Virus record (IMG/VR): IMGVR_UViG_3300020202_000001
Span: 160,419-224,418 of that record
Strand: one strand, 5' to 3'
DNA length: 64,000 nt
The notes under the pieces are model-generated. The model saw only the letters and a program-made list of their open reading frames with translations, was not told the DNA's origin and did not search any database. This document shows, one piece after another, positions 658-18,384 of the stretch (positions within the stretch are counted from its first letter, which is position 1; each line of letters opens with the position of its first letter). The position numbers and the translations under genes were made by a program.

Positions 658-2829
658 ATGTGGATCAAGCGAGCGCTCTTCAGGAACATCGGCCGCCACC
701 GCGAGCTGGACATCTACTTCCAGCGCGGGCTGGTGGGGATCTTCGGCCCGAACGGGTGGGGCAAGTCCACGATCGTCGACGGGATCTACGCCTGCCTGAC
801 GAACGACTGGAGCCGGTTCGCCGGCGTGAAACTCGACAACATCCGCGACACGGCCGACCCCGATGAGGAGTCGAGCATCACGGTCTGGGGCGAGCACGGG
901 GACGTGCCGTTCGAGGTGTTCCGCCGCCTCCGCCGGGCCGAGAGCGAGAAGCGGAAGAAGGGCCTCCGCAAGGACAACGAGCTGATCGTCGACGGTAAGA
1001 CGTTCGACAAGGACGAGGACATCAGGCGTGAGCTGACGGTACGCCTCGGCGTCAACCACAAGCTGATCGGCACGCACGTCTTCGTGGCCCAGCGGGAGAT
1101 GTTCCGGTTCGTCTCCGACACCCCGGGCGACCGGGCGGCGACGTTCCAGATGCTCTGCGGGACCGAGAAGGCCAAGCAGATCGTCGACGCGATCGAGGCC
1201 CTGCTGGAGCAGGACAAGGAGCTGCTGGTCGTCGTCGACGACAACAGCGACGAGATCAACGCCCGCATCGGCGGCCGGGCGGTCGAGCTGCAGGCGGCCA
1301 AGGAGGAGCTGGCGGCCGCCACGGCGCTGCTGCTGCCCAAGAAGCGGCGGCTACTTTCAAAAACCGTTATTGAGAAGCGGCAGGCCTGGCGGCGGGCGGT
1401 CAAGGCGATCACGGCCCTGAAGCCGACGATCGTCGCGAGGAAGAAGGAGGTGTCGTCGGCGGAGCTGAAGTACACGGTGACGTCCACGGAGCTGAACGCC
1501 CTCGCCGCCGCCTTCAAGCGGGACAAGCCGCTGGCAGAGGAGGCTCGGGCCACGCTGAAGCGGATCACCGAGTACAACGAGCGACAGGAGGTGCAGGGCA
1601 ACATCGAGCGGCGGCTGGCCGACGCCCGGACGAAGGTGAAGGAGCTGGGCGACCGCCCGCCCCTCCACGCGTCGGACGACAACCGCGAGCGCCTCGTCGA
1701 GGAGCGGGGCACGCTGCGGGTGGAGTACCGGGAGAACAAGACGCTCCTGACCACGTTCGCGATCGAGGGCGTGGTGAAGTGCCCGACGTGCGGCACGAGC
1801 GTCCGGGACCTCGACGAGCACCTGCGGCTCGTGAAGGTCAAGCAGCCCAGGCTCAAGGCGCGGGGGCTGAAGCTCGCCAACTTGATCGAGGCGATCGACG
1901 CGGCCCGCGCGGCCCGGGAGGCGTACGACAAGGAGCGGCGGAAGGCGGACGCGAAGGTCTCGGAGTACGAGGCCCTGCTGAAGCACGCCAAGGTGAGCGA
2001 TCCGCCGAAGGGCGACGCCAAGGCTCTGCAGCGGGTGGTCGACGACTTCGATGCGTTGGAGAAGAAGTACGACAAGGCCCGGCAGGTGAACGGCGATGCC
2101 GTCACCGCCGTGTCCACGGCCAAGGCCCGGCACGACGCCGTGGTCCAGCAGCGGGCGGACCTCCGGGTCGAGCGCGACGGCAACGTCGTGACCGACGAGG
2201 AGCTGGAGCGTGCCAAGAAGCGGATGGCCCGCCACGAGGCGGCCAAGGTCAACGTCGCCGCCCTCAAGCAGAAGGTCGAGGGGATCGAGGCGGCCCAGGC
2301 CCAGGACGTCGAGGAGCTGGAGCGGCTCAAGGCGAAGCTGGCCAAGAACAAGAAGGCCCACCAGTTCGCGGCGAAGCTCAAGAAGATCGCCGAGGTCATG
2401 CACCGGCAGGCCCTGCCGCAGATGGTGGCCCAGTCGAACCTCCAGGACATGGAGGGCGACATCAACAAGATCCTCGACATGTTCGGCAGCCCGTTCTGGG
2501 TCGAGACGGCGGAGGACCTGACCTTCACCGTCCACTTCCCGGGCGAGCCGCCGCGCAACGCCCAGCGGCTCAGCGTCGGGCAGAAGGGCGTGCTCGCGAT
2601 GGCGTTCCGCCCCGCGATCTCCGCCCTGTTCGACGCCGAGATCGGCATGATGACGCTGGACGAGCCGACCGCCGACATGGACGAGCGGAACCGCGGGTTC
2701 ATGGCCGCGGCGCTGGCCCAGTACGCGGCCCAGGTCCGGGGCCGCCGGCAGGTGATCGTCATCACCCACGCGAACGAGCTGCGGCAGTCGTTCGACCAGG
2801 TTGTGGAGCTAGGTGCACATGGCAACTGA
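658..2829 (+). CDS. sbcC: SbcC/Rad50-like SMC-family ATPase
   Basis: Walker A GPNGWGKS, long coiled coils, zinc hook CPTCG, signature LSVGQ, Walker B MTLDEPT, H-loop VITH. Confidence 0.92.
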   Translation: MWIKRALFRNIGRHRELDIYFQRGLVGIFGPNGWGKSTIVDGIYACLTNDWSRFAGVKLDNIRDTADPDEESSITVWGEHGDVPFEVFRRLRRAESEKRKKGLRKDNELIVDGKTFDKDEDIRRELTVRLGVNHKLIGTHVFVAQREMFRFVSDTPGDRAATFQMLCGTEKAKQIVDAIEALLEQDKELLVVVDDNSDEINARIGGRAVELQAAKEELAAATALLLPKKRRLLSKTVIEKRQAWRRAVKAITALKPTIVARKKEVSSAELKYTVTSTELNALAAAFKRDKPLAEEARATLKRITEYNERQEVQGNIERRLADARTKVKELGDRPPLHASDDNRERLVEERGTLRVEYRENKTLLTTFAIEGVVKCPTCGTSVRDLDEHLRLVKVKQPRLKARGLKLANLIEAIDAARAAREAYDKERRKADAKVSEYEALLKHAKVSDPPKGDAKALQRVVDDFDALEKKYDKARQVNGDAVTAVSTAKARHDAVVQQRADLRVERDGNVVTDEELERAKKRMARHEAAKVNVAALKQKVEGIEAAQAQDVEELERLKAKLAKNKKAHQFAAKLKKIAEVMHRQALPQMVAQSNLQDMEGDINKILDMFGSPFWVETAEDLTFTVHFPGEPPRNAQRLSVGQKGVLAMAFRPAISALFDAEIGMMTLDEPTADMDERNRGFMAAALAQYAAQVRGRRQVIVITHANELRQSFDQVVELGAHGN
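1354..1377. promoter_or_regulatory. degenerate copy of the 24-bp palindrome, inside sbcC
   Basis: ctttca-aaaa-ccgt-tatt-gagaag; AT-rich island in a GC3-biased gene. Confidence 0.55.
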
Positions 2830-3778
2830 GTGTCTCCGATTGCAAGTCTCGCCCGAGGGACAGGTGTGGTTCGGCGACGACCGCGAGGTCGCCGTCAACT
2901 CACGCCTGTCCCCCGAGGCGTTCGTCGCCGGCGAGCGGTTCCACGACGCGAAGCTGGTGCGGTTCCTCGGCCGGGCGGACAACGCCGTCCTGGTCGAGGC
3001 CGTGCACCAGCACAAGGCCCGGCTGGACCCGACGCAGCGGCTGTCGCTGCCGAAGGTCCAGATCGGGAGCCCGCAGATGGCGCTGGGCAAGCGGCCCGGC
3101 GACGTGCTGCCGGGCCTGTGGCACGCCTGTGTCAGCTCCGACGTGTTCGCCAGCTGGTACGAGCTGGCGGACGCGGACTACGTCGTCTACTCGCTGGTCG
3201 CGGCCGTGCGGGCCAACGGCGGGCGGCCGGACGACAAGGCGCGGCGGATCATGTACTACCACCCGGCGTGGCCGGCGATGAGCTTCACGCCCGCCTACGA
3301 CATCGACGCGTGCTGCGTGACGCTCGCGACGATCGTGGACGTGCGGTGGTTCACGCACCCGGCCAAGCCACACCGCCCGAGCAAGCTGTGGACGTACCTC
3401 GGGCTGACGCCGGAGAACGCCCGGGCGGTCTGCGGGGGCAAGCAGTACGGCGGCCACCACTACGACCGGGCGCGGACGGCGATGCGGGCGTGGCTCGGCT
3501 TCGACCCGCTCGTCTCGCACATGCTCGAAGGGAGCCTGGCCGAGAGCGGCCCGGCGTTCCTGCGACGCATCTGCGCGACGACGGAGGAGCGGAGCAAGGG
3601 CCTCCTGCTGGCGACGCGGAAGTACGTCCAGTTCTTCCGCGACGTGTGGGCGGCGGAGCGGTCGCAGGGCCGCCAGGCGTTCGAGCCCGAGATGTTTTTC
3701 AACACGACCGACGAGGTCACGGCGTACCGCTTACACCGGCAAACGCTGCACACGCCCGCCGAGGGCGGGCCGATTTGA
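2819..3778 (+). CDS. IS110/Tas-like Nop-domain protein, probably catalytically inactive
   Basis: HPAWPAMSFTP...TLATIVDVRWF...SKLWTYLGLTP and KGLLLATRKYV resemble the IS110 C-terminal/Tas Nop domain; no DEDD tetrad and no catalytic SG serine visible. Confidence 0.6.
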   Translation: MATECLRLQVSPEGQVWFGDDREVAVNSRLSPEAFVAGERFHDAKLVRFLGRADNAVLVEAVHQHKARLDPTQRLSLPKVQIGSPQMALGKRPGDVLPGLWHACVSSDVFASWYELADADYVVYSLVAAVRANGGRPDDKARRIMYYHPAWPAMSFTPAYDIDACCVTLATIVDVRWFTHPAKPHRPSKLWTYLGLTPENARAVCGGKQYGGHHYDRARTAMRAWLGFDPLVSHMLEGSLAESGPAFLRRICATTEERSKGLLLATRKYVQFFRDVWAAERSQGRQAFEPEMFFNTTDEVTAYRLHRQTLHTPAEGGPI

Positions 3779-3803
3779 CGCCCCTCTAACACGGCTGTAA
3801 CAT
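3775..3803 (+). promoter_or_regulatory. sigma70-type promoter for the RAMP-like gene
   Basis: TTGACG-17 bp-TAACAT. Confidence 0.65.
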
Positions 3804-3866: not shown

Positions 3867-4397
3867 GTGCGAGAACTAACTGTCAGGATCAGGTTCACGA
3901 AGCACTGCCTCGGCAGGGTGCTTGACCGGTCGGCGGCGGACGGGCGAATGGTCTTCGCCCGCACCCCGGACGCCCACGTCATGTTCCCCGCGAGCTGGCA
4001 TGCCTCGAACATGGTCCTCGCGGCGAAGTTGCTCGGGCGGCATCAGGGCTCGGTACGCAAGATCCTCTGGGACCCCGAAGTGGACTGCGTGACCCGGCCC
4101 GACCGGTGGTTCAAGCGGTACTACACCGGCAGGGACAACAAGCGACGCTTCGCGGTACACGAGGCGTTCTTCCCCGGCCAGGTGGTGGGCCTGAACTGTG
4201 CGGTCCCGTCCGAGGTGTCCGACGACGACCTCGTGCAGCTGATGAACATCGCCGGCCGGTACAAGGGCCTGAGCCCGTGGGACCCCGGCGAGTACGGACA
4301 GTTCCAGGTGGAGTCGATCGCGTTGCGACGAGGGCCGGCAATCCCTCCCGCCGCGACACAGAAGGAGAGCGAACAACAGTCAAACGTCAGCGCATAA
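3867..4397 (+). CDS. stand-alone RAMP (Cas7/Csm3-like) protein
   Basis: LTVRIRFTKHCLG (beta1), VMFPAS, HEAFFPGQ, C-terminal G-rich loop AGRYKGLSPWDPGEYGQFQV. Confidence 0.6.
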   Translation: MRELTVRIRFTKHCLGRVLDRSAADGRMVFARTPDAHVMFPASWHASNMVLAAKLLGRHQGSVRKILWDPEVDCVTRPDRWFKRYYTGRDNKRRFAVHEAFFPGQVVGLNCAVPSEVSDDDLVQLMNIAGRYKGLSPWDPGEYGQFQVESIALRRGPAIPPAATQKESEQQSNVSA

Positions 4398-4425
4398 AGA
4401 AGGCCTTCGACCGGCATCGAAGGCC
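4394..4425 (-). terminator. intrinsic terminator on the minus strand
   Basis: perfect 9-bp stem ggccttcga/tcgaaggcc (4402-4410/4417-4425) followed by ttctttat on the minus strand. Confidence 0.65.
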
Positions 4426-4482
4426 CTCTCGTTCTAGGAGGTAGCTACCCCTGCGGGCGTCCACCGAAGGTTTCCAACGCCC
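4394..4482 (-). ncRNA. candidate small RNA of about 85 nt
   Basis: bounded by a minus-strand promoter and terminator; internal hairpins; contains anti-Shine-Dalgarno ctcctag; no ORF. Confidence 0.45.
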
Positions 4483-4484
4483 AC

Positions 4485-4513
4485 ATCATAGCGCCCTCCT
4501 GAACGCAATGCAA
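4485..4513 (-). promoter_or_regulatory. sigma70-type promoter on the minus strand
   Basis: TTGCAT (4513-4508)-17 bp-TATGAT (4490-4485). Confidence 0.6.
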
Positions 4514-4585
4514 TACGAGTCAAGCCCCCGCGTGCGCGAAAAACGCCGTGCCGGGTCTCCGCGTCCAGGTTGAGGGCACTACGCA

Positions 4586-6130
4586 ATGGCAGAAAAACCG
4601 CAGATAACGCTGCTCAAGAGCGGCAACCGGCTGGTCGTCGCCCCTACCCCGACGCAGGTCAGGGAGGTGCTCGAAACGAAGCTGAGCTTCACCGCGAAGC
4701 ACATGCTCTACGGTGCCGAGCGGTTCGAGGAAGGCAACAAGGGCAAGCGGTTAGAGCTGATCGACTACCAGTGCTACTTCCTCGATCACAAGAACCGCAT
4801 CGCGACCAGCCTCGGCTTTTACCACCGCATCACCAAGGCCCTGAAGGCCCGCGGCTACCCGGTCAGGATTAAGGACCTGACGCCCCCGGCAAAGCCTGAG
4901 ATCTTCGTCCCCCGCTGGAACCGCGTTCTCGGCCCCGACTCCGGCATCAAGCTGCGGCACGGGCAGAAGGAGTTCCTGGAGTGGTTCGTCGCCCAGGTGC
5001 AGGCCGGGCTCCCCGGCCGCGCCGACGCCCCGCCCGGCTACGGCAAGAGCTTCCTGATCGGCCTCGCGGCCATGCTCTTCCCGAAGGCCAAGATCCACTA
5101 CACGTCCAAGCGGGCCAGCGTCATGCGGGACCGCATCTTCCCCGAGCTGTGCGGGATGCTCCCCGACGTCGGCCTGGTCGGCGGCGGGGTGCGGAAGGCC
5201 GGCTGTCGCGTGCAGGGGTACACGTTCGACTCGCTCCACCACAGCGACGGCAAGTGCGACATCCTCTTCACCGACGAGTGCCACGAGGCGGCGGCGGACG
5301 ACGCGGCCGAGCAGCTGGCGAAGTACGACGAGAGCCTGAACTACGGGTTCAGCGCCACGCAGGACATGCGGATCGACAACAAGGACCTCCGCGTCGAGGC
5401 CATGTTCGGGCCGGTCGGCTACAAGATGACGTACCAGACCGCCGTGAAGCACGGGCTCGTCGTGCCGCTCGAAGTGCGGTGGCGGAACGTGCGGATGGAC
5501 ATGGACCCGTGCGAGGGGATCGAGGACTCGGTCGAGCGTAAGCGGTGGGGCATCTGGCGGAACCGCCACCGCAACCAGCTGATCGCCAAGGACGCGCGGA
5601 GCCACCCGGACCAGCAGGTGCTCGTCACCTGCGAGACGATCGAGCACGCGCTGGCCCTGAAGCGCGAGATGCCCGAGTTCACGCTCGTGTACGCCGCGCG
5701 GGACATCTCGTTCGAGAAGCGACGCTACTTCCGCAAGCTGGGCCTGTGGCCGAAGAAGGGCCTCAAGCAGATGACGGAGGAGCGCAAGCAGAAGCTCACC
5801 CGCCTGTTCGAGCGGGGCAAGCTGCGGAAGGTGATCGTCACGACCGTCTGGAACGTCGGCGTGTCGATGAACCACCTCGAAGTCCTGGTGCGGGCCGACG
5901 CCGGCGGCAGCCCGATCATGGACACGCAGATCCCCGGCCGCGTCAGCCGCACGAACAAGGCGATCGGCAAGAAGCAGGGCGTCATCTACGACTACAAGGA
6001 CCAGTTCAACTCCGGCTTCAAACGGAAGAGCGGCAGCCGCCGCTCCAGCTACGTCGGCAACGGCTGGACCCAGGTCGACCCAGGCACGAAACCCGGCGAG
6101 AAACTGCAGCACCGGCTGTGGGAGGATTGA
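4586..6130 (+). CDS. superfamily 2 DNA helicase (UvsW/XPB-like)
   Basis: Walker A APPGYGKS, DECH, motif III SAT, motif VI QIPGRVSR. Confidence 0.88.
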   Translation: MAEKPQITLLKSGNRLVVAPTPTQVREVLETKLSFTAKHMLYGAERFEEGNKGKRLELIDYQCYFLDHKNRIATSLGFYHRITKALKARGYPVRIKDLTPPAKPEIFVPRWNRVLGPDSGIKLRHGQKEFLEWFVAQVQAGLPGRADAPPGYGKSFLIGLAAMLFPKAKIHYTSKRASVMRDRIFPELCGMLPDVGLVGGGVRKAGCRVQGYTFDSLHHSDGKCDILFTDECHEAAADDAAEQLAKYDESLNYGFSATQDMRIDNKDLRVEAMFGPVGYKMTYQTAVKHGLVVPLEVRWRNVRMDMDPCEGIEDSVERKRWGIWRNRHRNQLIAKDARSHPDQQVLVTCETIEHALALKREMPEFTLVYAARDISFEKRRYFRKLGLWPKKGLKQMTEERKQKLTRLFERGKLRKVIVTTVWNVGVSMNHLEVLVRADAGGSPIMDTQIPGRVSRTNKAIGKKQGVIYDYKDQFNSGFKRKSGSRRSSYVGNGWTQVDPGTKPGEKLQHRLWED

Positions 6131-6133
6131 CCC

Positions 6134-6952
6134 GTGGAGGCAACCTTGAAACGACGCAGGCGGGCCGGCGGCGCTGACCGCGGCCTGGAACAACTGGCGA
6201 CGCTGCTGCTGCGCACCTGGCAGGTGGAGCTGCAGCGTTACCTGAGCATGGGCCGCGAGCCCGACGACGTCGCCGACCCCGACGACGTCGTCCGCCACCT
6301 GACCGACACGTCGGGGGCGAGGCGGCAGCGGCGGATCGACAACCTGACGGAGAACATCGAGCTGGCCCCGGCCCGCGCCCGGGTCGACCGGTCGACGAGC
6401 CTGTGGATGGACGTCGCCCGGATCGTGGTGCGGAACCGGTTCGACCCGGAGCGGTTCGTGCGGCGGCAGTTCGCCGTGCTGTCGCCCCGGATGCCGACCG
6501 AGAAGCGCAGCCGGCTCCCGCAGCCGGAAATGCTCAAGAGCGAGCGGGCGATCAAGAACTACAAGGCCGGGCACGGCGTCTCGATCACTGAGATCCAGGC
6601 CGCCTTCAAGTCGCAGCTCTCCCGGTTCAAGGTGCAGGTCGCGGTCCTCGGGCAGTCGCGGTTCTACAACCTCGACAGCGAGGGGACGTGGATCGCGGTG
6701 CTGACCAACGAGGAGGAGCCGCTGTCGGCGCTGTTCCGGTACTGCACCGCCCGCCGCATCCTCAAGCAGGCGGGGCTCAAGCAGCGGGCGAAGTTCAAGG
6801 AGATCGCGGCCACCTACCGGACGGCGGCGGCGATCCAGTACGTCTTCGAGGCGGACGAGTACGACGAGATCTGGAAGGACCACCTGCCCGAGGGCTGGTC
6901 CGAGAAGGCCCAACGTATCTACCGCAGCTTTTACGGCTTCAACGACGAGTGA
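6134..6952 (+). CDS. hypothetical replication-module protein
   Basis: 272-aa ORF with high GC3 between the two helicases; function not recognised. Confidence 0.7.
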   Translation: MEATLKRRRRAGGADRGLEQLATLLLRTWQVELQRYLSMGREPDDVADPDDVVRHLTDTSGARRQRRIDNLTENIELAPARARVDRSTSLWMDVARIVVRNRFDPERFVRRQFAVLSPRMPTEKRSRLPQPEMLKSERAIKNYKAGHGVSITEIQAAFKSQLSRFKVQVAVLGQSRFYNLDSEGTWIAVLTNEEEPLSALFRYCTARRILKQAGLKQRAKFKEIAATYRTAAAIQYVFEADEYDEIWKDHLPEGWSEKAQRIYRSFYGFNDE

Positions 6953-6966
6953 AGGAGCACGCGACC

Positions 6967-8643
6967 ATGCCCAAGCAGAGCGACAAGAAGAAGCGGAAAG
7001 AGGGTCAGTTCGAGGACATGAAGCGGCGGCCGGCGCTCGACCAGCGGAAGAAGGAGCTGATGATGGCCGTCCTCCTCCGCAACGAGGACGCCTTCAAGGC
7101 CACCCGGGAGATCCTCAAGCCCGAGCACTTCGGGGAGTTCGACCGCGGGTACAAGGTCGCGTGGGCGTTGGCCAACGAGTTCTACGACGAGCACGAGGCC
7201 CTGCCCGGCTTCGAGTTCCTGATGGCGGAGATCGAGGGGGCCAGCGAGGCCAACCCGAACCTGTTCAACGACGCCGAGTACGACAAGCTCTCGTCGTTCA
7301 TCGAGTACGCGTTCGACAAGGACAGCTTCGAGGCGGACATCACCCAGGACCGCGCCAGCGCGGACTGGGGCATCAAGACGGCGAAGAAGTTTCTCGACGA
7401 GCGGCTCGCCGCCAAGATGAAGGAGGTCATCCAGTCCAAGGACATGCTCCCGGCGAACCTGCCGGAGTTCATGAACCAGATGGCCGCCGAGGCGGAGCAG
7501 ATCGCGTCCGTCTCTACCGAGGTCGACTTCGACCCGTTCCCCGACGACTGGCACAAGACCGCCAGCATCAAGGTCTTCTCCACCGGCATCCCGTTCTTCG
7601 ACGAGTTCCTCGGCGGCGGCCACGCGCCGGGCGAGGTGTACGGGCTGATGGGGCCGTACGGGTCGTGCAAGACGACGATCGCGTCGATGCTGATCGTCGA
7701 GGCGGCCAAGGCGTTCTACCAGGAGCACCTGCTCGACCCGAGCCAGCCGCCCAAGCTGGCCGTGATCGCCTGCTACGAGGCCCGCAAGCCGGAAATGCGG
7801 AACCGGACGCTCGGGTACGCCGCGATGATCCGCCGGGCGACGATGGAGGCGATGGCCCCGGACAAGCCGCTGGAGCTGGCCGGGTTCTCGACCTCCGACA
7901 AGCTGAAGAAGTACGAGAAGCGGATCTGGCGGGCGAAGATCAACAACGGCGAGAAGGTGGCCGGGGAGCTGGAACGCGTCATGGACGCGCTGACCTACCT
8001 CCGCCGGCACATGGTCGTGCTGGACATGACCGGCCACGAGACGAAGGGCGTGGGCAACGGCGGGATCAAGGAGGTCTCGCAGATGATCTCCAACGTCTGC
8101 CGCCAGCGGAAGGCCAAGTGCGGCCTGTTCGTGATGGACTACGTCGGCGCGATGGTGAAGCGGTACATGGGCGGCAACGACGTCGAGACGAGCGAGCTGC
8201 GGCACCTGATCGGCGGGGCTCCCCTGACGATCAAGAGCCAGATCGGCGACGTGTTCGACTGCCCCTCGTACGCCCTCCACCAGCTCGCCGGCGAGGCCAA
8301 CAGCTTCGGGTCGGCCGTCCTGGCCGACCACACGAACGCGGCGGAGTCGAAGAGCTTCGCGGAGAACCTCGACTTCAGCTTCTCGATCAGCAAGCCGCAG
8401 GACCCCGACGCGGTCGCGCTGTTCGGCTGCACGAAGCACCGCCGCCAGCCGGGGCGGATGAACACGATCATCAAGATCGACGGCGGGCTCAATCGCGTGT
8501 TGTCGGCCGACGACAAGTACATGATTAACACCCACGCCCGGAAGATCATGCTGATCGCCGACGTCAACAAGCTGCCCGAGAACTCGGCGATCAAGAAGAA
8601 CAGCGCCGCGGCCGGCGGCGGGTCGGCGTCCAGCCTGGACTAG
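6967..8643 (+). CDS. DnaB-like replicative helicase
   Basis: ATG 6967; N-terminal helical domain (LKPEHF), Walker A GPYGSCKT, Walker B FVMDYV, HQL motif, TKHR arginine-finger region. Confidence 0.8.
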   Translation: MPKQSDKKKRKEGQFEDMKRRPALDQRKKELMMAVLLRNEDAFKATREILKPEHFGEFDRGYKVAWALANEFYDEHEALPGFEFLMAEIEGASEANPNLFNDAEYDKLSSFIEYAFDKDSFEADITQDRASADWGIKTAKKFLDERLAAKMKEVIQSKDMLPANLPEFMNQMAAEAEQIASVSTEVDFDPFPDDWHKTASIKVFSTGIPFFDEFLGGGHAPGEVYGLMGPYGSCKTTIASMLIVEAAKAFYQEHLLDPSQPPKLAVIACYEARKPEMRNRTLGYAAMIRRATMEAMAPDKPLELAGFSTSDKLKKYEKRIWRAKINNGEKVAGELERVMDALTYLRRHMVVLDMTGHETKGVGNGGIKEVSQMISNVCRQRKAKCGLFVMDYVGAMVKRYMGGNDVETSELRHLIGGAPLTIKSQIGDVFDCPSYALHQLAGEANSFGSAVLADHTNAAESKSFAENLDFSFSISKPQDPDAVALFGCTKHRRQPGRMNTIIKIDGGLNRVLSADDKYMINTHARKIMLIADVNKLPENSAIKKNSAAAGGGSASSLD

Positions 8644-8648
8644 GAACT

Positions 8649-9716
8649 ATGTCGGAACCCCTGAACCCAGCGCTCTACCGCAACCTGAAGAGGGTCTTCG
8701 GCAAGGTGGTGATCTCGAACGAGGGCGTCGCCTTCGTCGGTCGCTACGTGCCGAAGATCGTCGAGGAGGGCGAGGAACTCTACATCGAGAACTCGGGCGA
8801 GTATTACCGGGTGAACTGCAACAAGTGCAGCGACACCCGGCACCGCCTGTACATCAACCACCGGTGGGCGAAGCGGGACGAGAAGGGCCGGCGGAACCTG
8901 TGGATGGCCGTCTGCTACAACGACCCCACCTGCTACTCCGACCAGGAATCCCGCGAGGAGCTGTACAACCGGCTGAGCGAGATCCGGGGCGTGCTGGAGG
9001 AGGCGAAGATCAAGCAGGGCGTCGTCCGCAAGGAGGCGTCGATCGTCGACCCGCCCGGCCCGATCATCACGCTCGACAAGCTGCCGCCGAACCACCCCGC
9101 CAACGTCTACCTCGCCGACCGGTACTTCGACCCCGAGCTGCTCGGGCGGACGTACGGCGTCGGGCTGGTGACGAACTCGATGTACTACCTCGCCCGCGAC
9201 CGCATCTACTTCCCGATCGTCCAGGACGGGAAGCTGCGGGGCTGGCAGTGCCGGTACGCCGGGGAGCTGGACTGGAAGGACAAGTCCAACCCGCCGAAGA
9301 GCTTCAACTGCCCGGACATGATGCGGGGCCACCTGCTGTACGGCCTCGACCAGGCGAAGCGCTACCAGACCGGGGTCCTCGTCGAGGGGCCGACGTCGCG
9401 GCTCAACTTCGGGCCGATGGCGATGGCCTCGCTCGGGTTCCCGATCACGAACAACCAGTCCCGCTTGGTCGTGCCGCACTTCAAGGACCACTCGATGGTC
9501 ATGCTGTTCGACCCCGACGTGCTGGAGAGCCCGTCGATGAAGCGGAAGTACGACCAGGTGTACGACGAGCTGAAGGACCAGTTTCGACACGGGCTCGCGG
9601 CGGTCGCGCTGCCCAAGCCTTACGACCCGGCCGACCTCGATCGGTACTGGGTCCGGGAGTACGTCCGCCGCGAGGCCAAGGCCCAAGGGGTCAAGGTGCG
9701 GTGGGAGAAACGGTGA
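8649..9716 (+). CDS. DnaG-type primase
   Basis: N-terminal Zn motif (CNKC...H...C), IYFPI...GWQCR, Toprim VEGP and FDPD; directly after the helicase. Confidence 0.82.
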   Translation: MSEPLNPALYRNLKRVFGKVVISNEGVAFVGRYVPKIVEEGEELYIENSGEYYRVNCNKCSDTRHRLYINHRWAKRDEKGRRNLWMAVCYNDPTCYSDQESREELYNRLSEIRGVLEEAKIKQGVVRKEASIVDPPGPIITLDKLPPNHPANVYLADRYFDPELLGRTYGVGLVTNSMYYLARDRIYFPIVQDGKLRGWQCRYAGELDWKDKSNPPKSFNCPDMMRGHLLYGLDQAKRYQTGVLVEGPTSRLNFGPMAMASLGFPITNNQSRLVVPHFKDHSMVMLFDPDVLESPSMKRKYDQVYDELKDQFRHGLAAVALPKPYDPADLDRYWVREYVRREAKAQGVKVRWEKR

Positions 9717-10255: not shown

Positions 10256-10272
10256 AAACCGGTTTTGAGATC
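10249..10272. promoter_or_regulatory. 24-bp palindrome copy upstream of the DNA polymerase
   Basis: gatcta-aaaa-ccgg-tttt-gagatc. Confidence 0.85.
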
Positions 10273-10282
10273 GGTGAGTCAC

Positions 10283-13200
10283 ATGCAGACAGTGAAGAAA
10301 CGACGCAAGATCATCACCGACCTCGACGCCGACGCGAAGAAGGCGGAAGCGAGGGCGGCACACAAGGAGATCGGTGGCAGCGGGCTGTACCCGCTCGACG
10401 CCCCGGGCATGCCCCTGCCCGGCCCCGACTTCATGGAACACGCCCGCAACCTGGGCGACCTCTCGGACTTCAAGAAGGTGAAGGTCGAGGGGCAGGGCAA
10501 GAAGAAGACCGACACGGTGCTCGACTCGATCGGCGACAAGCTGGTCGAGCTGCACCGCAGGGCTCTCCGCGAGCCCGGGTTCACGATGCCGATCCAGACG
10601 AAGCCGGGCATGCGCAAGAGCGTGCCGTTCGTGCCGGGTCACATCTGGGGCCAGTACATGAAGGAGTACGAGGCGGGCGACCGGATCGCGGTCGACGGCC
10701 CCCGCCCGGCCGACGTCATGGTCCTCGGCAAGATGCCGGGCAAGACGGAGGTGCAGGAAGGCCGGAACATGGTCGGCGAGTCCGGCAAGCTGCTGATCGA
10801 CGTGATCCGCGAGCACCACATCAAGGGCTCGCCGAACTGGTACGTGACGAACGTGCTGAAGTTCCAGCCGCCGGACAGCAGCGGCACGATCAAGGCCCCG
10901 TGGCTCAAGGACTGCATGCCGCTGCTCCACCAGGAGCTGCGGATCGTGCGGCCGAAGTACATCCTCTGCCTCGGGGCCGACGCGTCCAAGGCCCTGCTCG
11001 GGCCGAAGTACGGCGTCGACTACATGGACGGCCGGGTGATGGAGCTGGAGTACCCGGTCCACATGGAGGCGACGGACGACCCGGACAAGGTGCTGATGCA
11101 CAAGGCCCTGGTCATGACGGTCGTCCACCCGGCGGCCGTCGTCCGCGCCCCCGAGCAGCGCCGCCGGCTGGAGCGGGGCATGGCCCGCTTCGCGATGCTC
11201 CAGAACGGCATCCGGTTCGACAAGGAAGAGGTCGACATCGACCACCGGACGATCCGCACGCTGGAGCAGCTCCAGGCCCTGCTGCACGAGATCGACCACG
11301 ACCCCTACAAGAAGGACGACTGGATCTCGTTCGACGCGGAGTGGAACGGCGAGCACCCGCAGAACAAGGGCAGCTACGTCCGCACGATGCAGCTGGCGTG
11401 GCGGCCGAAGCACGCGGCCGCGATCATCTGGTCCGACACGACCGGCAAGTTCGTCTTCTGCGACGAGGACGGCAAGCCGGCCAAGAAGCGGGCGATCAAG
11501 CTGCTGAACGAGTGGTTCGCGACCAAGCGGATCACGATGCACTTCGGGGTGGCCGACCTGGAGTGGATGCAGTTCATCGGCCTGACCGAGCTGGCGAAGC
11601 GGTACCGGGTCCCGCTGTACGACAAGTTCTTCGGCGAGTTCGAGAAGCCACAGCGGAAGAAGCTGCGGAAGATGGGCTTCGCCCCCGGCGACCTCGTGCC
11701 GGCCTGGGTCCGCACCCACTTCGAGGGCGGGCACGACACCGGCCTCGCCGGCCACGCGATCGAGGAGACCGCCCAGCTCGGCCTCGAAGTGCTGGCGATG
11801 CGGTACACGACGTGCCCCCGGTACGACATCCCGCTCCACAACTGGAAGGAGGCGTTCTGCAAGGAGAAGGGGTACAAGGCCAAGGACCTCGAAGGGTACG
11901 GCCCCTGCCCCGACGAGATCATCGTGCCGTACGGCTGCTACGACGCGGACGCGACCCTGCGGCTGATGTACGAGCAGCTCCCGCTGATCGACAACGACTA
12001 CGAGGGCAACTGCTGCCGGGAGAGCTTCTGGGAGTCGATGCTCACCGTGGGGCCGATCCTGGAGATGCACTGCACGGGCATCCCGGTCGACCGCAAGCGG
12101 ATCGACTTCCTGACGGCCGCGTTCATGAAGGCCCGGGCCGAGCAGGAGGAGAAGATCCGCAAGTGGGCGAGGTGGCCGGAGTTCAACATCCGGTCCGTCA
12201 CCCAGGTGCGGGAGTTCCTGTTCGGCGAGAAGTACAACGGCAAGAAGACCCCGACCGGCGACATCGTCAGCGTCCGCCCCCGCAAGGGCGTGGACGGGGC
12301 GAAGCACACCGCCAAGAGCCTCTACCTCGAACCGATCCTCGACACGTCCAAGCCGCCCAAGGCGTGGTTCGACATCAAGGACAAGGGGCTCGAACACGAG
12401 CACACGCCCGGGACCGGCAAGACGATCCTCGGCGTGCTCGCGCAGGAGAACCAGGAGCAGAGCGAGTACGTCCAGTGGATTCGCGACTACCGGTTCCTCG
12501 ACCAGGTCCTCAAGAGCGTGCTCCGGCCGCCCGTGGTGGACAAGGACGGAGAGGTCGTGCGGGACGAGACGGCCGAGGCGGCCAGCAGCATCGACGCCTC
12601 GACCGGGCAGGAGGCCAGCCCGTACAGCTTCGGGCGGGACAACCTCGGCGGCGTGGTCTACGACGCCGGGCTCGCGGCCGTGATCTGCGGCGACGGCCGG
12701 GTGCGGACGCACCTGTACCCGACCACCGAGACCAAGCGGTGGCGGTCGGCCCGGCCGAACCTGCAGAACATGTCGAAGCGGCGGGACCCCGACTACACCC
12801 GCCTGCTGGGCGGCACGAAGAACGAGAAGGGCAAGTGGGTCGGCGGCGACTACAAGTACAAGCTGCGGTCGCTGCTGCACGCCATCCCCGGGCACGTCCT
12901 GGTCGAGGCGGACTTCATCGGCGCGGAGCTGTACCTGATGGCGGTCATGTCGGGCGACCCGACGATGATCGAGCACGCCACGCGGAACCAGCTGCCCGAG
13001 GACGACCCGCTCTACTACGACATCCACTCCAACGTCGCCGTGCTCGCCTTCAACCTGAAGTGCGAGCCGACGAAGAAGGGGCTGGAGTCGATCGGGAAGG
13101 TGTCCCTCCGCATCGCGGCGAAGAACGTGATCTTCGGCGTCGCCTACGGGCGGCAGGCGAAGGCGATCGCGCTGCAGTGCAAGGAGGAGGGCAACCCGAT

Positions 13201-13756
13201 CACGGTGCAGCAGGCGCAGATCATCATCGACATCGTGTTCCAGCTGTACCCGGGGCTCAAGCCGTTCTTCACCGAGGCCCAGCAGCGGTCGAAGGACCCC
13301 CGCTGGATCTGCTCGTGCTTCGGGGCGTTCCGCCGGTTCCCGCAGACCGACGACTTCTCGCTGCAGGGCGAGTTCGAGCGGCAGGCGATGAACTTCGGGA
13401 TTCAGTCGGGCATCGCCTCGGCCATGGACCGGGCGCTGGCCTACATGGAGGACTATCGCAACAACACGATCGGGGACCCGGACTTCTTCAAGTTCGCCCT
13501 CCAGATCCACGACGCCGTCCTGCTGCACGTCCCCTACGCCAACGTCGAGCGGGTCGTCGAGGACGTGCTGCCGTACAACCTGACCAAGCGGGTCGAGATC
13601 TACCCGACCACGCTCGACGGGGTGCCCACCGGCGAGGGTCCGTACCACCTGGGCATCGACACCGAGATCTTCGACCACTGGGGCGAGCCGCTCACGCCGA
13701 ACTTCTGCGAGGAGCACGGCATCCCCCTCAAGTACGCCAAAGGAAAGGCAGCGTGA
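10283..13756 (+). CDS. family A DNA polymerase with N-terminal uracil-DNA glycosylase-like domain
   Basis: UDG-4-like VMVLGKMPG..E..G..VGESG, YVTNVLK, HPA; exonuclease FDAE and YDAD; motif A EADFIGAEL, motif B RIAAKNVIFGVAYG, motif C QIHDA. Confidence 0.92.
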   Translation: MQTVKKRRKIITDLDADAKKAEARAAHKEIGGSGLYPLDAPGMPLPGPDFMEHARNLGDLSDFKKVKVEGQGKKKTDTVLDSIGDKLVELHRRALREPGFTMPIQTKPGMRKSVPFVPGHIWGQYMKEYEAGDRIAVDGPRPADVMVLGKMPGKTEVQEGRNMVGESGKLLIDVIREHHIKGSPNWYVTNVLKFQPPDSSGTIKAPWLKDCMPLLHQELRIVRPKYILCLGADASKALLGPKYGVDYMDGRVMELEYPVHMEATDDPDKVLMHKALVMTVVHPAAVVRAPEQRRRLERGMARFAMLQNGIRFDKEEVDIDHRTIRTLEQLQALLHEIDHDPYKKDDWISFDAEWNGEHPQNKGSYVRTMQLAWRPKHAAAIIWSDTTGKFVFCDEDGKPAKKRAIKLLNEWFATKRITMHFGVADLEWMQFIGLTELAKRYRVPLYDKFFGEFEKPQRKKLRKMGFAPGDLVPAWVRTHFEGGHDTGLAGHAIEETAQLGLEVLAMRYTTCPRYDIPLHNWKEAFCKEKGYKAKDLEGYGPCPDEIIVPYGCYDADATLRLMYEQLPLIDNDYEGNCCRESFWESMLTVGPILEMHCTGIPVDRKRIDFLTAAFMKARAEQEEKIRKWARWPEFNIRSVTQVREFLFGEKYNGKKTPTGDIVSVRPRKGVDGAKHTAKSLYLEPILDTSKPPKAWFDIKDKGLEHEHTPGTGKTILGVLAQENQEQSEYVQWIRDYRFLDQVLKSVLRPPVVDKDGEVVRDETAEAASSIDASTGQEASPYSFGRDNLGGVVYDAGLAAVICGDGRVRTHLYPTTETKRWRSARPNLQNMSKRRDPDYTRLLGGTKNEKGKWVGGDYKYKLRSLLHAIPGHVLVEADFIGAELYLMAVMSGDPTMIEHATRNQLPEDDPLYYDIHSNVAVLAFNLKCEPTKKGLESIGKVSLRIAAKNVIFGVAYGRQAKAIALQCKEEGNPITVQQAQIIIDIVFQLYPGLKPFFTEAQQRSKDPRWICSCFGAFRRFPQTDDFSLQGEFERQAMNFGIQSGIASAMDRALAYMEDYRNNTIGDPDFFKFALQIHDAVLLHVPYANVERVVEDVLPYNLTKRVEIYPTTLDGVPTGEGPYHLGIDTEIFDHWGEPLTPNFCEEHGIPLKYAKGKAA

Positions 13757-14599: not shown

Positions 14600-16753
14600 A
14601 TGGCTCGAAACCGAGGCCTCAAGCCCCGCTCCAGCGGGCAGTACGACAACCGTTCCCACGGCCGGCGCGAGGGCGGCGGCCCGCCGGACGACCGGACGAT
14701 CAACACCCAGGTGGCCCGCGTGAACCTGGTGCGTGCGCGGTGGAAGGAGGGGCCGCTGATCGCCCGCCCGTGGCCGGCGCTGGGGTACGAGGACCCGACG
14801 CAGCTCGTGCCGGGCCGCAAGCACATCGACAGCCACGGCCAGAACCACTGGATCGTGCGTGCCCCGGTGGCGAAGTACATCGGCATCCACGAGCACTTCA
14901 CCTTCATCCTCTACAAGCCGTGGGAGGTGGAGACGAACCCGGAGGTCAAGAAGAACAACCCGTACCTCGTGCTCTACCGCGCGGCGAAGGCGGCCCTCAA
15001 GGCCGGCAACTTCGGCCCCGGGCGGAAGTGGGACGCGGACTGGAACAAGCTGATGCCGACGATCGGCGGCGACGACACGGGCGGTGCCCCGATGTCCAAC
15101 CCGAACGCGGTCGGCTTCTTCCAGGGCGAGATCTACGCCAACGGCGACAAGGACTACATCGGCAACGACCGCACCCTGCCGCTCGGCGCGGCGGACGGCG
15201 ACGACCTGCAGGTGGTCCAGATCGCCGGGGCCGCGTTCGACCGGCTGCTCGATCTGCTCGACACGCCCAAGCCGGACGCGGAGGGTGACGAGGAGAAGGA
15301 GCCCTGGAAGTTCTTCAAGTTCGGCGACCCGACCGGCGTCCCGCAGGAGGACGGCAGCGTCGAGGGCGGCAAGTTCATCTACGTCTTCAACCCCAAGCGG
15401 GCGAAGGTGAAGGACGGCGACAAGGGCAAGATCGTCACCGTGGGCGGGCAGAGCTTCATGCTCAGCCGGTCCAGCTGGGAGGGCAAGATCAGCCAGACCC
15501 AGGGGTACGAGACGGCCCTGGCCAGCGTGTTCAAGAGCGAGGACGGGACGAAGTTCACGCCCGACCTCGACAACGACCGGGCCGAGCGCGTCCGCGACAC
15601 GTTCCAGTTCTGGTGGGACGACGAGGAGAGCGGGCAGAAGGGCCTGCTCAAGGTCCCCTCGATCGAGGAGCAGTGCGTGCTGATCGCCCGCGCGTTCCAG
15701 GACGTCCCCAAGCTGCTGACGTATGCCTGGGGCGACCACGACGAGTTCCTGTCCGGCGAGGTGCAGGACATCCTCAAGCAGAAGCGCACGGCGGCCATGC
15801 CGGGCGACGACGACGAGCGTGACGCCGCCCGCGGCGACGACGACGACGATGACGTGGAGGGCGACGACGACGACGACGCGCCGAAGGCGGGCAAGAAGGT
15901 CCGCACCGACCCCACGCAGAAGACCGGCAAGAAGAAGCCGGCCGACGACGAGGACGACGACACGGACGGCGACGACGATGACGACGCCGACGAGAAGCCG
16001 GCCGCCGGCAAGAAGGGCGACAAGAAGAAGCCCGCCAAGAAGGACGATGACGAGGACGACGACGCCGACGACGACACGGACGCGGAGAACGCGGACGATG
16101 ACGACGCCGGCGACGACGACGATGACGCCGACGACACGGACGACACCGGCGACGACGAGGACGAGGCCGAGGGCGAAGCCGAGGCGGGCGACGACGACGA
16201 TGACGCCGACGACTCGGACGACGACGAGGCCGGTGACGATGACGACGACACCGACGAGGACGCTGGCGACGACGACGACGCTGACGACACCGACGACGAT
16301 GACGCCGGTGACGACGACGACGACGACGCGGACGCGCCCAAGCCCGGCAAGAAGGGCGACAAGAAGCCGGCGGGCAAGGCCGACAAGAAGCCGGCCGGCA
16401 AGAAGGACGACGACGACGAGAACGCCGGCTACTTCGCCGAGGGCGACGACGACAAGAAGCCCGCGGGCAAGAAGGGCGACAAGAAGCCGGCCGCGAAGAA
16501 GGACGACGACGACGACGCGGACGATGACGACGCCGGCGACGACGCCGACGACGACAAGACCGCGTCGATGAAGAAGTCCACGGACGCCGCCCGCGACCGC
16601 GCGGGCAAGCGTGCCAACCTGCCGCCCGACAAGAAGGGCGACGGGAAGAAGCCCGCCGCCGACAAGAAGCCGGCCGACAAGCCGGCGGACAAGAAGGCGG
16701 ACAAGAAGCCGGCGGATAAGCCCGCCGCCGGCAAGACCGGCAAGAAGAAGTAG
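14600..16753 (+). CDS. probable ssDNA-binding protein with very long Asp-rich and Lys-rich tail
   Basis: about 400-aa aromatic-rich globular N-terminus followed by about 300 aa of D-rich and KKPA repeats; sits between tmk and recA. SSB call is inference. Confidence 0.5.
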   Translation: MARNRGLKPRSSGQYDNRSHGRREGGGPPDDRTINTQVARVNLVRARWKEGPLIARPWPALGYEDPTQLVPGRKHIDSHGQNHWIVRAPVAKYIGIHEHFTFILYKPWEVETNPEVKKNNPYLVLYRAAKAALKAGNFGPGRKWDADWNKLMPTIGGDDTGGAPMSNPNAVGFFQGEIYANGDKDYIGNDRTLPLGAADGDDLQVVQIAGAAFDRLLDLLDTPKPDAEGDEEKEPWKFFKFGDPTGVPQEDGSVEGGKFIYVFNPKRAKVKDGDKGKIVTVGGQSFMLSRSSWEGKISQTQGYETALASVFKSEDGTKFTPDLDNDRAERVRDTFQFWWDDEESGQKGLLKVPSIEEQCVLIARAFQDVPKLLTYAWGDHDEFLSGEVQDILKQKRTAAMPGDDDERDAARGDDDDDDVEGDDDDDAPKAGKKVRTDPTQKTGKKKPADDEDDDTDGDDDDDADEKPAAGKKGDKKKPAKKDDDEDDDADDDTDAENADDDDAGDDDDDADDTDDTGDDEDEAEGEAEAGDDDDDADDSDDDEAGDDDDDTDEDAGDDDDADDTDDDDAGDDDDDDADAPKPGKKGDKKPAGKADKKPAGKKDDDDENAGYFAEGDDDKKPAGKKGDKKPAAKKDDDDDADDDDAGDDADDDKTASMKKSTDAARDRAGKRANLPPDKKGDGKKPAADKKPADKPADKKADKKPADKPAAGKTGKKK
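15826..16753 (+). repeat. low-complexity gac/gat and aagaagccg(gcc) coding repeats
   Basis: poly-Asp runs and recurring GKKGDKKPA / DKKPA units. Confidence 0.85.
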
Positions 16754-16848: not shown

Positions 16849-18384
16849 ATGCCGAAACAGGAACGCAAGGCACGGAAGCCGGTCCCCGTCGCGAAGCGAC
16901 AGCCCCGCGACGAGGACGACGGCGAGGAGACGAAGGCCGCGAAGCCGGCCGCCAAGCCGGCAGCCTCGGAGAAGGCCACCGGGTCCGCCCCCGGCACGCT
17001 CAAGCGCCGCTTGAAGCCCCGGGAGGACCCCACCGGCGCGAGCACCGGTCCGAACGACCGTGTTCACGCCCCGCGGCCCGTCCACAGCCTCGACAACCGG
17101 GACCTCTCCAAGATCCCCAAGAAGGGCAAGCAGCGCCTCGCCGAGTGGCGGGGCCAGAACCACGGCAAGAAGCTCGACAAGTACATGCAGGGCATGATGA
17201 GTGCCTCGCGTCGAAAGTTCGGCCACAACGCCGTGTTCGCGGGGCACACCGACGAGAACATGATCGTCGGCATCCCGTGCCCGCTCGCCTTCGAGTACCT
17301 GCTCTGCCAGGACGTCTTCCCCCTCGGCCTCATCTACCAGATCGTCGGTCTGGCGGGCTCGCTCAAGAGTTCGCTGATCTACGAGATCATGCGCTGGTTC
17401 CGCAACGCCGGCGGCGGCTCGCACCTTGAGGAGGTGGAGACGAAGTTCTCCCCAGAACTCATGCGGTCGATCGTCGGGTACGCGGAGGACGAGACGAACG
17501 TCATCGTCGACCGGTGCGACTCGGTCGAGGACTGGCAGCGGAAACTGCTCTACAACATCGACCAGCAGAAGGAGCTGCTGACCTGGGAGGACAAGGCCAA
17601 CAAGATCCCGGGTCCGGGTCGAACGGTGCCCATCTGCTTCGCGGTCGACAGCGTCAGCGGCAAGCTGAGCATGGAGACGCAGGAGAAGGTCAACGACCAG
17701 GGCTTCCACGGCCGGTCGTTCCCGATCGAGGCGATGAGCATCACCGGGTTCATGAAGACCGTGCCCCAGATGATCGACGGGTGGCCGTTCGCGCTGGTGC
17801 TGAACAACCACCTGAAGATGGGCAAGGACGACCAGGGCCACGACGTCCGGCGGATCACCGGCGGCGCGGGCCTGAACTTCCAGGAGTCGTTCGAGCTGGA
17901 GACGAAGGTCCGCAAGTCGAAGATCGAGTGCTCCGAGTGGGAGGGCATCCAGATCGGCATCCGCTGCACGAAGAACTCGTTCGGCCCCACGCACCGCCGC
18001 ATCGACGCACGCATGCTGTGGTGGGAGGAGATGAACGAGGAGACGGGCGACTACGACCAGATCACCCGCTGGGACTGGCACTGGTCCACCGTGCAGCTGC
18101 TGACCGGCGAGAACATGCTGAGCGCCATGATCCGGGCTCGGCTGAAGGAAGCCGGCGTCCACGTCGACGCGCCGAAGAAGGCCGACGTGGAGAACCTCGC
18201 GTGGAGCAAGAACCTCGGCATGAAGAAGGAAGACGCCGTGCCGTGGAGCGAACTCGGCGCGATGATCGCCAAGGACACCGTTCTGTTGAACACCATCAGG
18301 CAGTGCCTCGGCATCAAGCGCCGCCCGCTCCTGCAGGGCGACTACCTCCAGCAACTGGAAGGGCTGCGAGAGCAGCTCCCGTGA
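16849..18384 (+). CDS. RecA/UvsX-like recombinase
   Basis: variant Walker A GLAGSLKSS, Walker B VDSV, LNNHL, ITGGAGLNF, CTKNSFG. Confidence 0.8.
   Translation: MPKQERKARKPVPVAKRQPRDEDDGEETKAAKPAAKPAASEKATGSAPGTLKRRLKPREDPTGASTGPNDRVHAPRPVHSLDNRDLSKIPKKGKQRLAEWRGQNHGKKLDKYMQGMMSASRRKFGHNAVFAGHTDENMIVGIPCPLAFEYLLCQDVFPLGLIYQIVGLAGSLKSSLIYEIMRWFRNAGGGSHLEEVETKFSPELMRSIVGYAEDETNVIVDRCDSVEDWQRKLLYNIDQQKELLTWEDKANKIPGPGRTVPICFAVDSVSGKLSMETQEKVNDQGFHGRSFPIEAMSITGFMKTVPQMIDGWPFALVLNNHLKMGKDDQGHDVRRITGGAGLNFQESFELETKVRKSKIECSEWEGIQIGIRCTKNSFGPTHRRIDARMLWWEEMNEETGDYDQITRWDWHWSTVQLLTGENMLSAMIRARLKEAGVHVDAPKKADVENLAWSKNLGMKKEDAVPWSELGAMIAKDTVLLNTIRQCLGIKRRPLLQGDYLQQLEGLREQLP

Follow-up and report, generated by a model that had tools for sequence, protein, structure and literature searches.

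The window analysed here is the final 64 kb (64,000 nucleotides, positions 160,419 to 224,418) of IMG/VR record IMGVR_UViG_3300020202_000001, a virus record of 224,418 bp that is complete and bears terminal repeats. Close to its start, between a Rad50/SbcC-like ATPase gene and a superfamily 2 (SF2) helicase gene, lie two adjoining plus-strand genes, referred to here as X (2819..3778) and Y (3867..4397). The product of X, a nuclease-dead RuvC-like domain joined to a Nop-like domain, is best explained as a catalytically inactive protein of the RuvC-plus-Nop superfamily (TasR, IS110 and Nop5) that has no coiled coil. The product of Y, 176 amino acids long, has the predicted structure of a minimal, single-RRM RAMP of the Cas7/Csm3 type, similar to Vipr. 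X, probably together with Y, may constitute an RNA-dependent recognition module that does not cut and that acts with the neighbouring DNA enzymes, a reading to which we assign a probability of about 0.42.

The open reading frame (ORF) of X spans 2813..3778 on the plus strand and would yield 321 amino acids from GTG 2813 or 319 from ATG 2819. The ATG, which is preceded by a GGAG-like site and at which the preliminary description also began the gene, is the more likely true start, and the 319-residue product is identical to database protein P0001; residue numbers throughout count from the GTG at 2813. An exhaustive profile search recovers a large family, without earlier annotation and seen only in environmental phage contigs: 956 cluster representatives pass E ≤ 1e-3 and 537 pass E ≤ 1e-30, almost all of them 300-330 amino acids long. 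The public runs that contain the sequence are soil-metagenome DNA. No member was found in a scan of 185,579 prokaryote genomes with one conserved peptide pattern, and neither X nor the adjoining helicase was found among cultured phage records. The 224,418-bp genome carries X once. X changes as a core gene would, at the slow pace of the replication genes: its identity between genomes is 27-37%, on a par with that of Rad50, DnaB and primase. All of the words to which a preliminary description of this DNA had drawn attention (KVQIGSP, HPAWPAMSFTP, TLATIVDVRWF, SKLWTYLGLTP and KGLLLATRKYV) occur in the translation and sit within the most conserved blocks of the family, and so are not there by chance.

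The AlphaFold2 model of X, computed on the family alignment (predicted local distance difference test, pLDDT, 85.3; predicted template modelling score, pTM, 0.85), begins with a RuvC/RNase-H-like domain (residues ~4-110; 2822..3142, plus strand) whose strands are predicted at residues 5-12, 18-21, 46-52 and 81-85, with none past residue 117, in agreement with the beta-rich N-terminus noted earlier. This is followed by a short linker of two predicted helices, 120-134 and 141-147 (3149..3253, plus strand), which carries two positions that are remnants of the family pattern, 116 (tyrosine in X, histidine in 86% of the family) and 122 (aspartate). The remainder is an all-helical, Nop-like C-terminal domain (residues ~148-312; 3254..3748, plus strand), in which the conserved blocks are HPAWPA..F, IVDxRWF, LGLTP, R219, W227, FLxR, GLL, W279, FxPxxFF and [YF]xxH308. 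A RuvC-like N-domain followed by a Nop-type helical domain is the arrangement that defines the superfamily at the level of fold, and X has it.

Three independent structure searches, namely VIA-align, an ESM Atlas shape search and Foldseek against Swiss-Prot models, each ranked TasR or IS110 proteins first for the X model, and it is only through these that the fold is detected. The best structural match is chain B of 9MTY. Among ESM Atlas shapes, the top match is a Candidate Phyla Radiation cluster labelled 'IS110 family transposase' (TM score 0.64 over 263 residues), and the Swiss-Prot models matched by Foldseek, all at full length, are the transposase of IS1111A (probability 1.00), a 'family 20 transposase' (0.99) and, at 0.91, IS1328 as well as the Piv invertases. 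Foldseek produced no significant match in the PDB, AFDB clusters or BFVD, and the language-model features of the ESM Atlas were uninformative. In sequence space, PADLOC and PDB searches with the single sequence and with a profile gave no relevant match, and neither X nor 16 relatives matched any Pfam model at E ≤ 1, including PF02371, PF01548 and PF01798, the profiles against which a check had been proposed. The weak signals that do appear are all confined to residues ~141-222. They comprise phrog_4285, 'transposase' (E 0.0023), and the NCBIfam model TIGR_Tas_endo (NF052498), which X matches at 13.8 bits and its relatives at no more than 22.3 bits, the cut-off being 100; 10 of 13 relatives match this model (best E 2.4e-4), with further relatives at about 1e-4, and one relative matches transpos_IS110 at E 0.03. 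The IS110/Tas-like assignment of the preliminary description is borne out in structure and finds no Pfam match in sequence; X is very probably a fold-level homolog of TasR and IS110.

The catalytic centers of these relatives are missing from X. Across the 152 diverse relatives that were aligned for residue conservation, the N-domain (residues 1-110) holds no conserved acidic residue. The place of the canonical RuvC glutamate, at the end of strand 81-85, is taken by Ser86-Pro87 in X, the proline being present in 151 of the 152. At position 13, where the first strand ends, 59% have aspartate and most of the others alanine, glycine or serine. The family as a whole retains polar remnants at H11 (83%), H116 (86%) and D/E122 (95%), and the full H-D-H-D/E set at positions 11, 13, 116 and 122 occurs in 60 of the 152. 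With Q11, S13 and Y116, X has lost three of these four family-typical residues, and is therefore degenerate even by the standard of its own family. The serine site of IS110 is likewise absent, since the C-terminal domain contains no beta strand and no Ser-Gly follows LGLTP. The earlier observation that neither a DEDD tetrad nor an SG serine can be seen is thus confirmed, X very probably cannot cut by a RuvC or a serine mechanism, and there is good support for binding rather than cutting.

Judged by its predicted structure (pLDDT 80.4, pTM 0.74), the product of Y is plainly a Cas7-type RAMP. Foldseek matched the model to 60 PDB chains at E ≤ 1e-3, and the 50 chains listed all have probability 1.00 and are Csm3, type VII Cas7, Cmr4 or Cas7-11; in the ESM Atlas, its own viral clusters come first, followed by RAMPs, Csm4 and Cas7. 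Sequence profile searches returned no match for Y. In an alignment of eight sequences, a G-rich loop lies between helix 119-132 and strand 146-153, with G130, G134, S136, P137, Y143 and G144 invariant, and comparison of the Y profile with the PDB gave a weak match, restricted to the G-loop, to the SUSP1 Vipr chain 36pp_D (E 1.4). Y follows X in 10 of 11 lineages; no other gene of the block is as well conserved (37-57% identity between genomes). Between the two genes, a consensus scan picks out a promoter-like site on the plus strand (3775..3803; TTGACG, 17 nt, TAACAT), and -10-like boxes recur in the same spacer elsewhere: TAAAAT (L002:8913-8975), TAAAAT (L006:8964-9017) and TAAGAT (L010:6925-6973). 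These motifs suggest that Y has a promoter of its own though it lies within the same string of genes. Immediately 3′ to Y, folding of 4398-4585 predicts a strong plus-strand hairpin at 4398..4429 (z -2.24), which is probably an operon boundary or terminator; the equivalent spacers in other loci also form a strong hairpin and have no sequence in common.

X and Y are embedded in a replication and repair module. An Mre11/SbcD-like gene lies just upstream of the window, and the Rad50/SbcC-like ATPase (658..2829, plus strand; SMC_N, AAA_23, phrog_77 and Rad50 NCBIfam models) ends in a stop codon (2827-2829) such that it overlaps the start of X by 11 nt. Across loci, sbcC and X are separated by -26 to +33 nt. 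An SF2 helicase (ResIII plus Helicase_C; 4586..6130), as judged from profiles and synteny, is retained immediately after the X-Y pair, and after a 272-residue protein the series continues, still on the plus strand, with a DnaB-like replicative helicase (6988..8643) and a primase (8649..9716), the pair being recognized by phrog_19 and phrog_47, a family A DNA polymerase of 1,163 amino acids (10265..13756; phrog_17), an acidic repeat protein and a UvsX-like recombinase (16849..18384; phrog_97, E 2e-12), with which the replication and recombination block closes. According to Pfam labels, the polymerase counterparts in related loci bear a uracil-DNA glycosylase (UDG) domain. The core order SbcD-SbcC-X-Y-helicase-...-primase-polymerase holds across all related contigs that were examined, even where identity falls to 24-27%. 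Given that X occurs once per genome at a fixed syntenic position, it is not mobile. X is best explained as a vertically inherited core gene of an Mre11/Rad50-helicase-primase-PolA module in environmental, mostly jumbo, phages, translationally coupled to the Rad50-like gene, and as neither a mobile element nor a stand-alone defence gene.

Other features of the module and its surroundings can be described briefly. A 641-nt coding insert separates sbcD from sbcC (17-657), with one or two small ORFs, one of which has Cys-x-x-Cys pairs; it occurs in this phage only, the two genes abutting or overlapping in all other loci. The 272-residue protein between the SF2 and DnaB-like helicases (6134-6952) is conserved in all loci and has no Pfam, PHROGs, NCBIfam or PADLOC match; its identity of 22-32% is the lowest in the module. 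The acidic repeat protein (14600-16753; 717 amino acids, no PHROG match), encoded between polymerase and recombinase, contains long tandem coding repeats of two kinds, acidic (Asp-rich) and Lys-Pro-Ala-rich, with similar repeats in two related genomes, G001 and G003. A canonical single-stranded DNA-binding protein (SSB; PF00436) was not detected in the complete genome. Farther downstream, a minus-strand tRNA-Pro (anticodon TGG; 50841-50925) is situated where the G+C content rises from about 0.67 to 0.73-0.75, and the last ~18 kb of the window have no blastn counterpart in the otherwise collinear G001. This high-G+C end block looks foreign or lineage-specific, and there is no host junction, since the record is a complete phage with terminal repeats. 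In three related loci, a PfkB-type sugar kinase and a cytidylyltransferase-like gene lie a few genes upstream of sbcD (L002:1975-3486, L006:2248-3967 and L017:421-2288); the two are fused in L017, where a CsrA homolog is also encoded on the other strand, and they may be concerned with nucleotide-sugar or DNA-modification chemistry.

Comparisons can be made between X and several families of known function. TasA, TasH and TasR have been defined, TasR with an inactive RuvC domain has been noted, and Tas, IS110 and Nop5 have been linked to one another (Faure et al., 2025; PMC12045711). Dead TasR and TasA are RNA-guided transcriptional repressors, stem-loop tigRNAs may lie within coding sequence, and a divergent clade of compact TasR proteins without arrays resides in dense viral genomes, for which another source of guides was left open (Xu et al., 2026; 10.64898/2026.09.09.750476). 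Like TasR, X is a phage-encoded protein of about 320 amino acids with a RuvC-like N-domain, a Nop-type helical C-domain and an inactivated RuvC site. In having neither coiled coil nor array and in belonging to a dense phage genome, it matches the arrayless compact clade feature for feature, the comparison being with the published description of that clade. X differs from TasR in falling far below the family cut-off, in lacking the coiled coil and a tigRNA, and in being a core gene that is coupled to Mre11/Rad50 and adjoined by a Cas7-like RAMP. The words RAMP, Cas7, Rad50, SbcC and replication do not occur in the paper of Xu et al. (10.64898/2026.09.09.750476), and a literature search found no paper that names both Vipr and either TasR or the Nop domain.

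The IS110 bridge-RNA recombinases (IS621, ISCro4, IS1111A and Piv) share the domain order and fold of X, and the words ...RWF...LGLTP of X resemble the Transposase_20 core. However, X lacks the DEDD tetrad, the catalytic serine with its beta-sheet, and matches to PF01548 and PF02371, and because it overlaps sbcC there is no upstream non-coding region of the kind that supplies a bridge RNA. Compared with the box C/D proteins Nop5, Nop56 and Nop58, X has no PF01798 match and no coiled coil and belongs to a virus of bacteria; neither fibrillarin nor L7Ae was identified as a partner, such partners not having been searched for separately. VIPR systems, for their part, consist of small phage RAMPs (Vipr), accessory (vap) genes and vrRNAs with tandem GGY/NN pentamers (10.64898/2026.04.26.720920). 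Y, too, is a small phage RAMP that has a single RRM and a G-rich loop; an accessory gene predicted to bind nucleic acid adjoins it, and nuclease and helicase genes are close by. In contrast to VIPR loci, scans of three genomes revealed no period-5 repeat RNA of any motif, and X and Y reside within a replication module that has almost no intergenic space.

An RNA-dependent module is favoured because all characterized members of both families hold RNA and because the RNA-binding cores are the best conserved parts of X and Y. By analogy with all of its characterized relatives, X would hold RNA through its Nop-like domain, and Y would hold it along the backbone in the manner of Cas7 and Vipr. By means of this RNA, the module would bind DNA or RNA-DNA hybrids, and such binding could regulate or direct the adjoining DNA-processing enzymes without cleavage. 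The analysis demonstrates the two folds, the loss of catalytic residues, the conservation and synteny, and the absence of arrays; we infer RNA binding, cooperation between X and Y and a link to Mre11/Rad50 alike. If the RNA exists, it would be single-copy, embedded in coding sequence or made elsewhere, rather than part of an array. A bolder version, which we regard as improbable, casts X and Y as the proteins of an RNA-dependent system not described before, one that lacks arrays, is core to phage DNA metabolism and uses RNA to mark DNA. The mark might recruit the Mre11/Rad50 nuclease and the SF2 helicase as effectors in trans, much as Nop5 recruits fibrillarin, or it might conceivably open DNA for recombination-dependent or R-loop-primed replication.

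Several observations weigh against an RNA-dependent role. Overall, no candidate RNA was found in the three genomes scanned, which are that of the window (G000, complete), G003 (complete) and G001 (90% complete, 202 kb). The window contains no tandem array and no Rfam family, none of the three genomes has a TIGR-like or a period-5 array, the two complete genomes have no CRISPR array either, and scans for VIPR-type period-5 tracts in canonical, degenerate and motif-free form found none above shuffled controls. Every apparent gap between genes in G000 is coding, as judged by frame-specific G+C content at third codon positions (GC3). No intergenic element is conserved between lineages in the spacers after X and after Y, which look like a promoter and terminator hairpins, and blastn between collinear genomes revealed no conserved non-coding DNA island. 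These scans could miss single-copy or coding-embedded RNAs, including single hidden stem-loop units. The protein evidence has its own difficulties. Because the Tas scores lie far below the curated cut-off of 100 bits and the TIGR_Tas_endo hidden Markov model also weakly matches 7 of 14 control genomes, the sequence signals of X are by themselves only a lead. Every characterized Tas, IS110 and Nop5 protein dimerizes on two-fold-symmetric RNA through a coiled coil, and the model of X predicts no such dimerization hairpin: in TaTasR it consists of two helices of ~28 residues (K109-D138 and A142-H168; 10.64898/2026.09.09.750476), against 15 and 7 residues for helices 120-134 and 141-147 of X. Finally, Y is absent from one lineage (L008/L009), and membership in a core replication module is unlike known Tas or VIPR loci. 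The preliminary description had proposed an RNA-guided binder rather than a recombinase or nuclease; the loss of the catalytic sites supports its second half, and for the first, which no guide array or candidate RNA accompanies, guidance by RNA is plausible.

Certain repeats that could be mistaken for guide arrays were rejected. In G000, all repeats of period 25 or more fall within coding sequence. The 36-nt-period TIGR arrays that the preliminary description had suggested looking for are represented there only by a ~2.2-kb collagen-like Gly-X-Y coding repeat (G000:C1:88497-90749), which gives a spurious 36-nt period in Tandem Repeats Finder. The repeats of G003 are also exclusively coding, with 26-residue and 14-residue tandem repeats in giant ORFs of 2,984 amino acids (L025-L026, G003:134681-143635) and 1,981 amino acids (L023, G003:88651-94596). 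An island of low GC3 that might conceal an RNA inside X was likewise discarded, GC3 being 0.95 throughout the copy in the window. G001 does possess an array, which was rejected as a source of guides for X as it belongs to a type V CRISPR system, lies 10 kb from X and is absent from G000. This compact CRISPR-Cas locus (L038:9596-12247, G001:149596-152247) comprises a TnpB/Cas12-like gene for 589 amino acids (NF040570, 1.9e-13; Cas12f2, 3e-6). A TATAAT promoter comes next, and then eleven repeats of 36 nt, which have a 3′ hairpin and are separated by ~36-nt spacers. The shape of the repeat resembles that in the Cas12j/CasPhi arrays of huge phages.

In the principal alternative, which is somewhat less probable, X would be an exapted, RNA-free scaffold that acts independently of any guide as a subunit or regulator of the phage Mre11/Rad50 complex or replisome, binding DNA ends, branched DNA or primer RNA-DNA hybrids by their structure, with Y as a single-strand nucleic-acid coat of an SSB-like or mediator-like kind. 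The strict synteny of X and its start/stop coupling with the Rad50-like gene are consistent with such a role, as are its core-gene rate of evolution, the lack of arrays, of any candidate RNA and of spare intergenic space, the predicted lack of a coiled coil, and the occurrence of the UvsX-like recombinase and the SF2 helicase in the same block. The missing canonical SSB points in the same direction, although it is weak evidence, given that phage SSBs are diverse. All characterized Nop-domain proteins and Cas7-type RAMPs bind RNA, however, so that a loss of RNA binding in two adjoining proteins of these types is less likely, and conservation in X is highest in the Nop-core blocks.

A second alternative, which seems unlikely, is that X is a transcriptional repressor of the dead-TasR type whose one or few stem-loop tigRNAs are hidden in coding sequence, possibly in X or in a neighbouring gene, and time the expression of phage or competitor genes. 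This is a narrow form of the RNA-guided binder first proposed, and it would make X a true, if divergent, TIGR-Tas protein. It draws on the precedents that dead TasR and TasA repress transcription and that tigRNAs can sit in coding sequence, on the resemblance of X to the divergent arrayless clade (10.64898/2026.09.09.750476), and on the promoter-like site after X. On the other side, no repeated unit was detected, GC3 shows no local dip along X, the Tas model scores at most 22 bits against its cut-off of 100, and the coiled coil required for a complex of two proteins with one tigRNA is absent from the model. Least probable is a non-canonical nuclease: the family would keep a site made up of H11, D13, H116 and D122, and X would cut particular DNA structures, for instance as a resolvase of junctions or a flap nuclease. 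In its favour, the context is one of recombination, 59-95% of relatives conserve these positions, which fall at the expected places of the first, third and fourth RuvC residues, and 60 of 152 have the complete set. Against it, the glutamate position is Ser-Pro in nearly all members, Asp13 is missing in ~40%, and X keeps one residue of the four.

TIGR-Tas (2025) and VIPR (2026) are newly recognized phage-borne RNA-guided systems, and the Cas7-like RAMP is the ancestral RNA-holding protein of both CRISPR and VIPR. Against this background, the X locus offers a testable context for the question, raised by the Tas authors, of whether the arrayless clade draws its guides from another source. If X and Y prove to be RNA-dependent, two RNA-guided scaffolds would have come together as a new kind of system linked with replication and repair, one that would unite the separately discovered phage lineages of Tas and Vipr in a single machine. 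If instead they were exapted for RNA-free DNA metabolism, they would provide a clear case of domestication in the direction opposite to the usual one. Since the X family is large, the answer would apply to a whole lineage of environmental jumbo phages.

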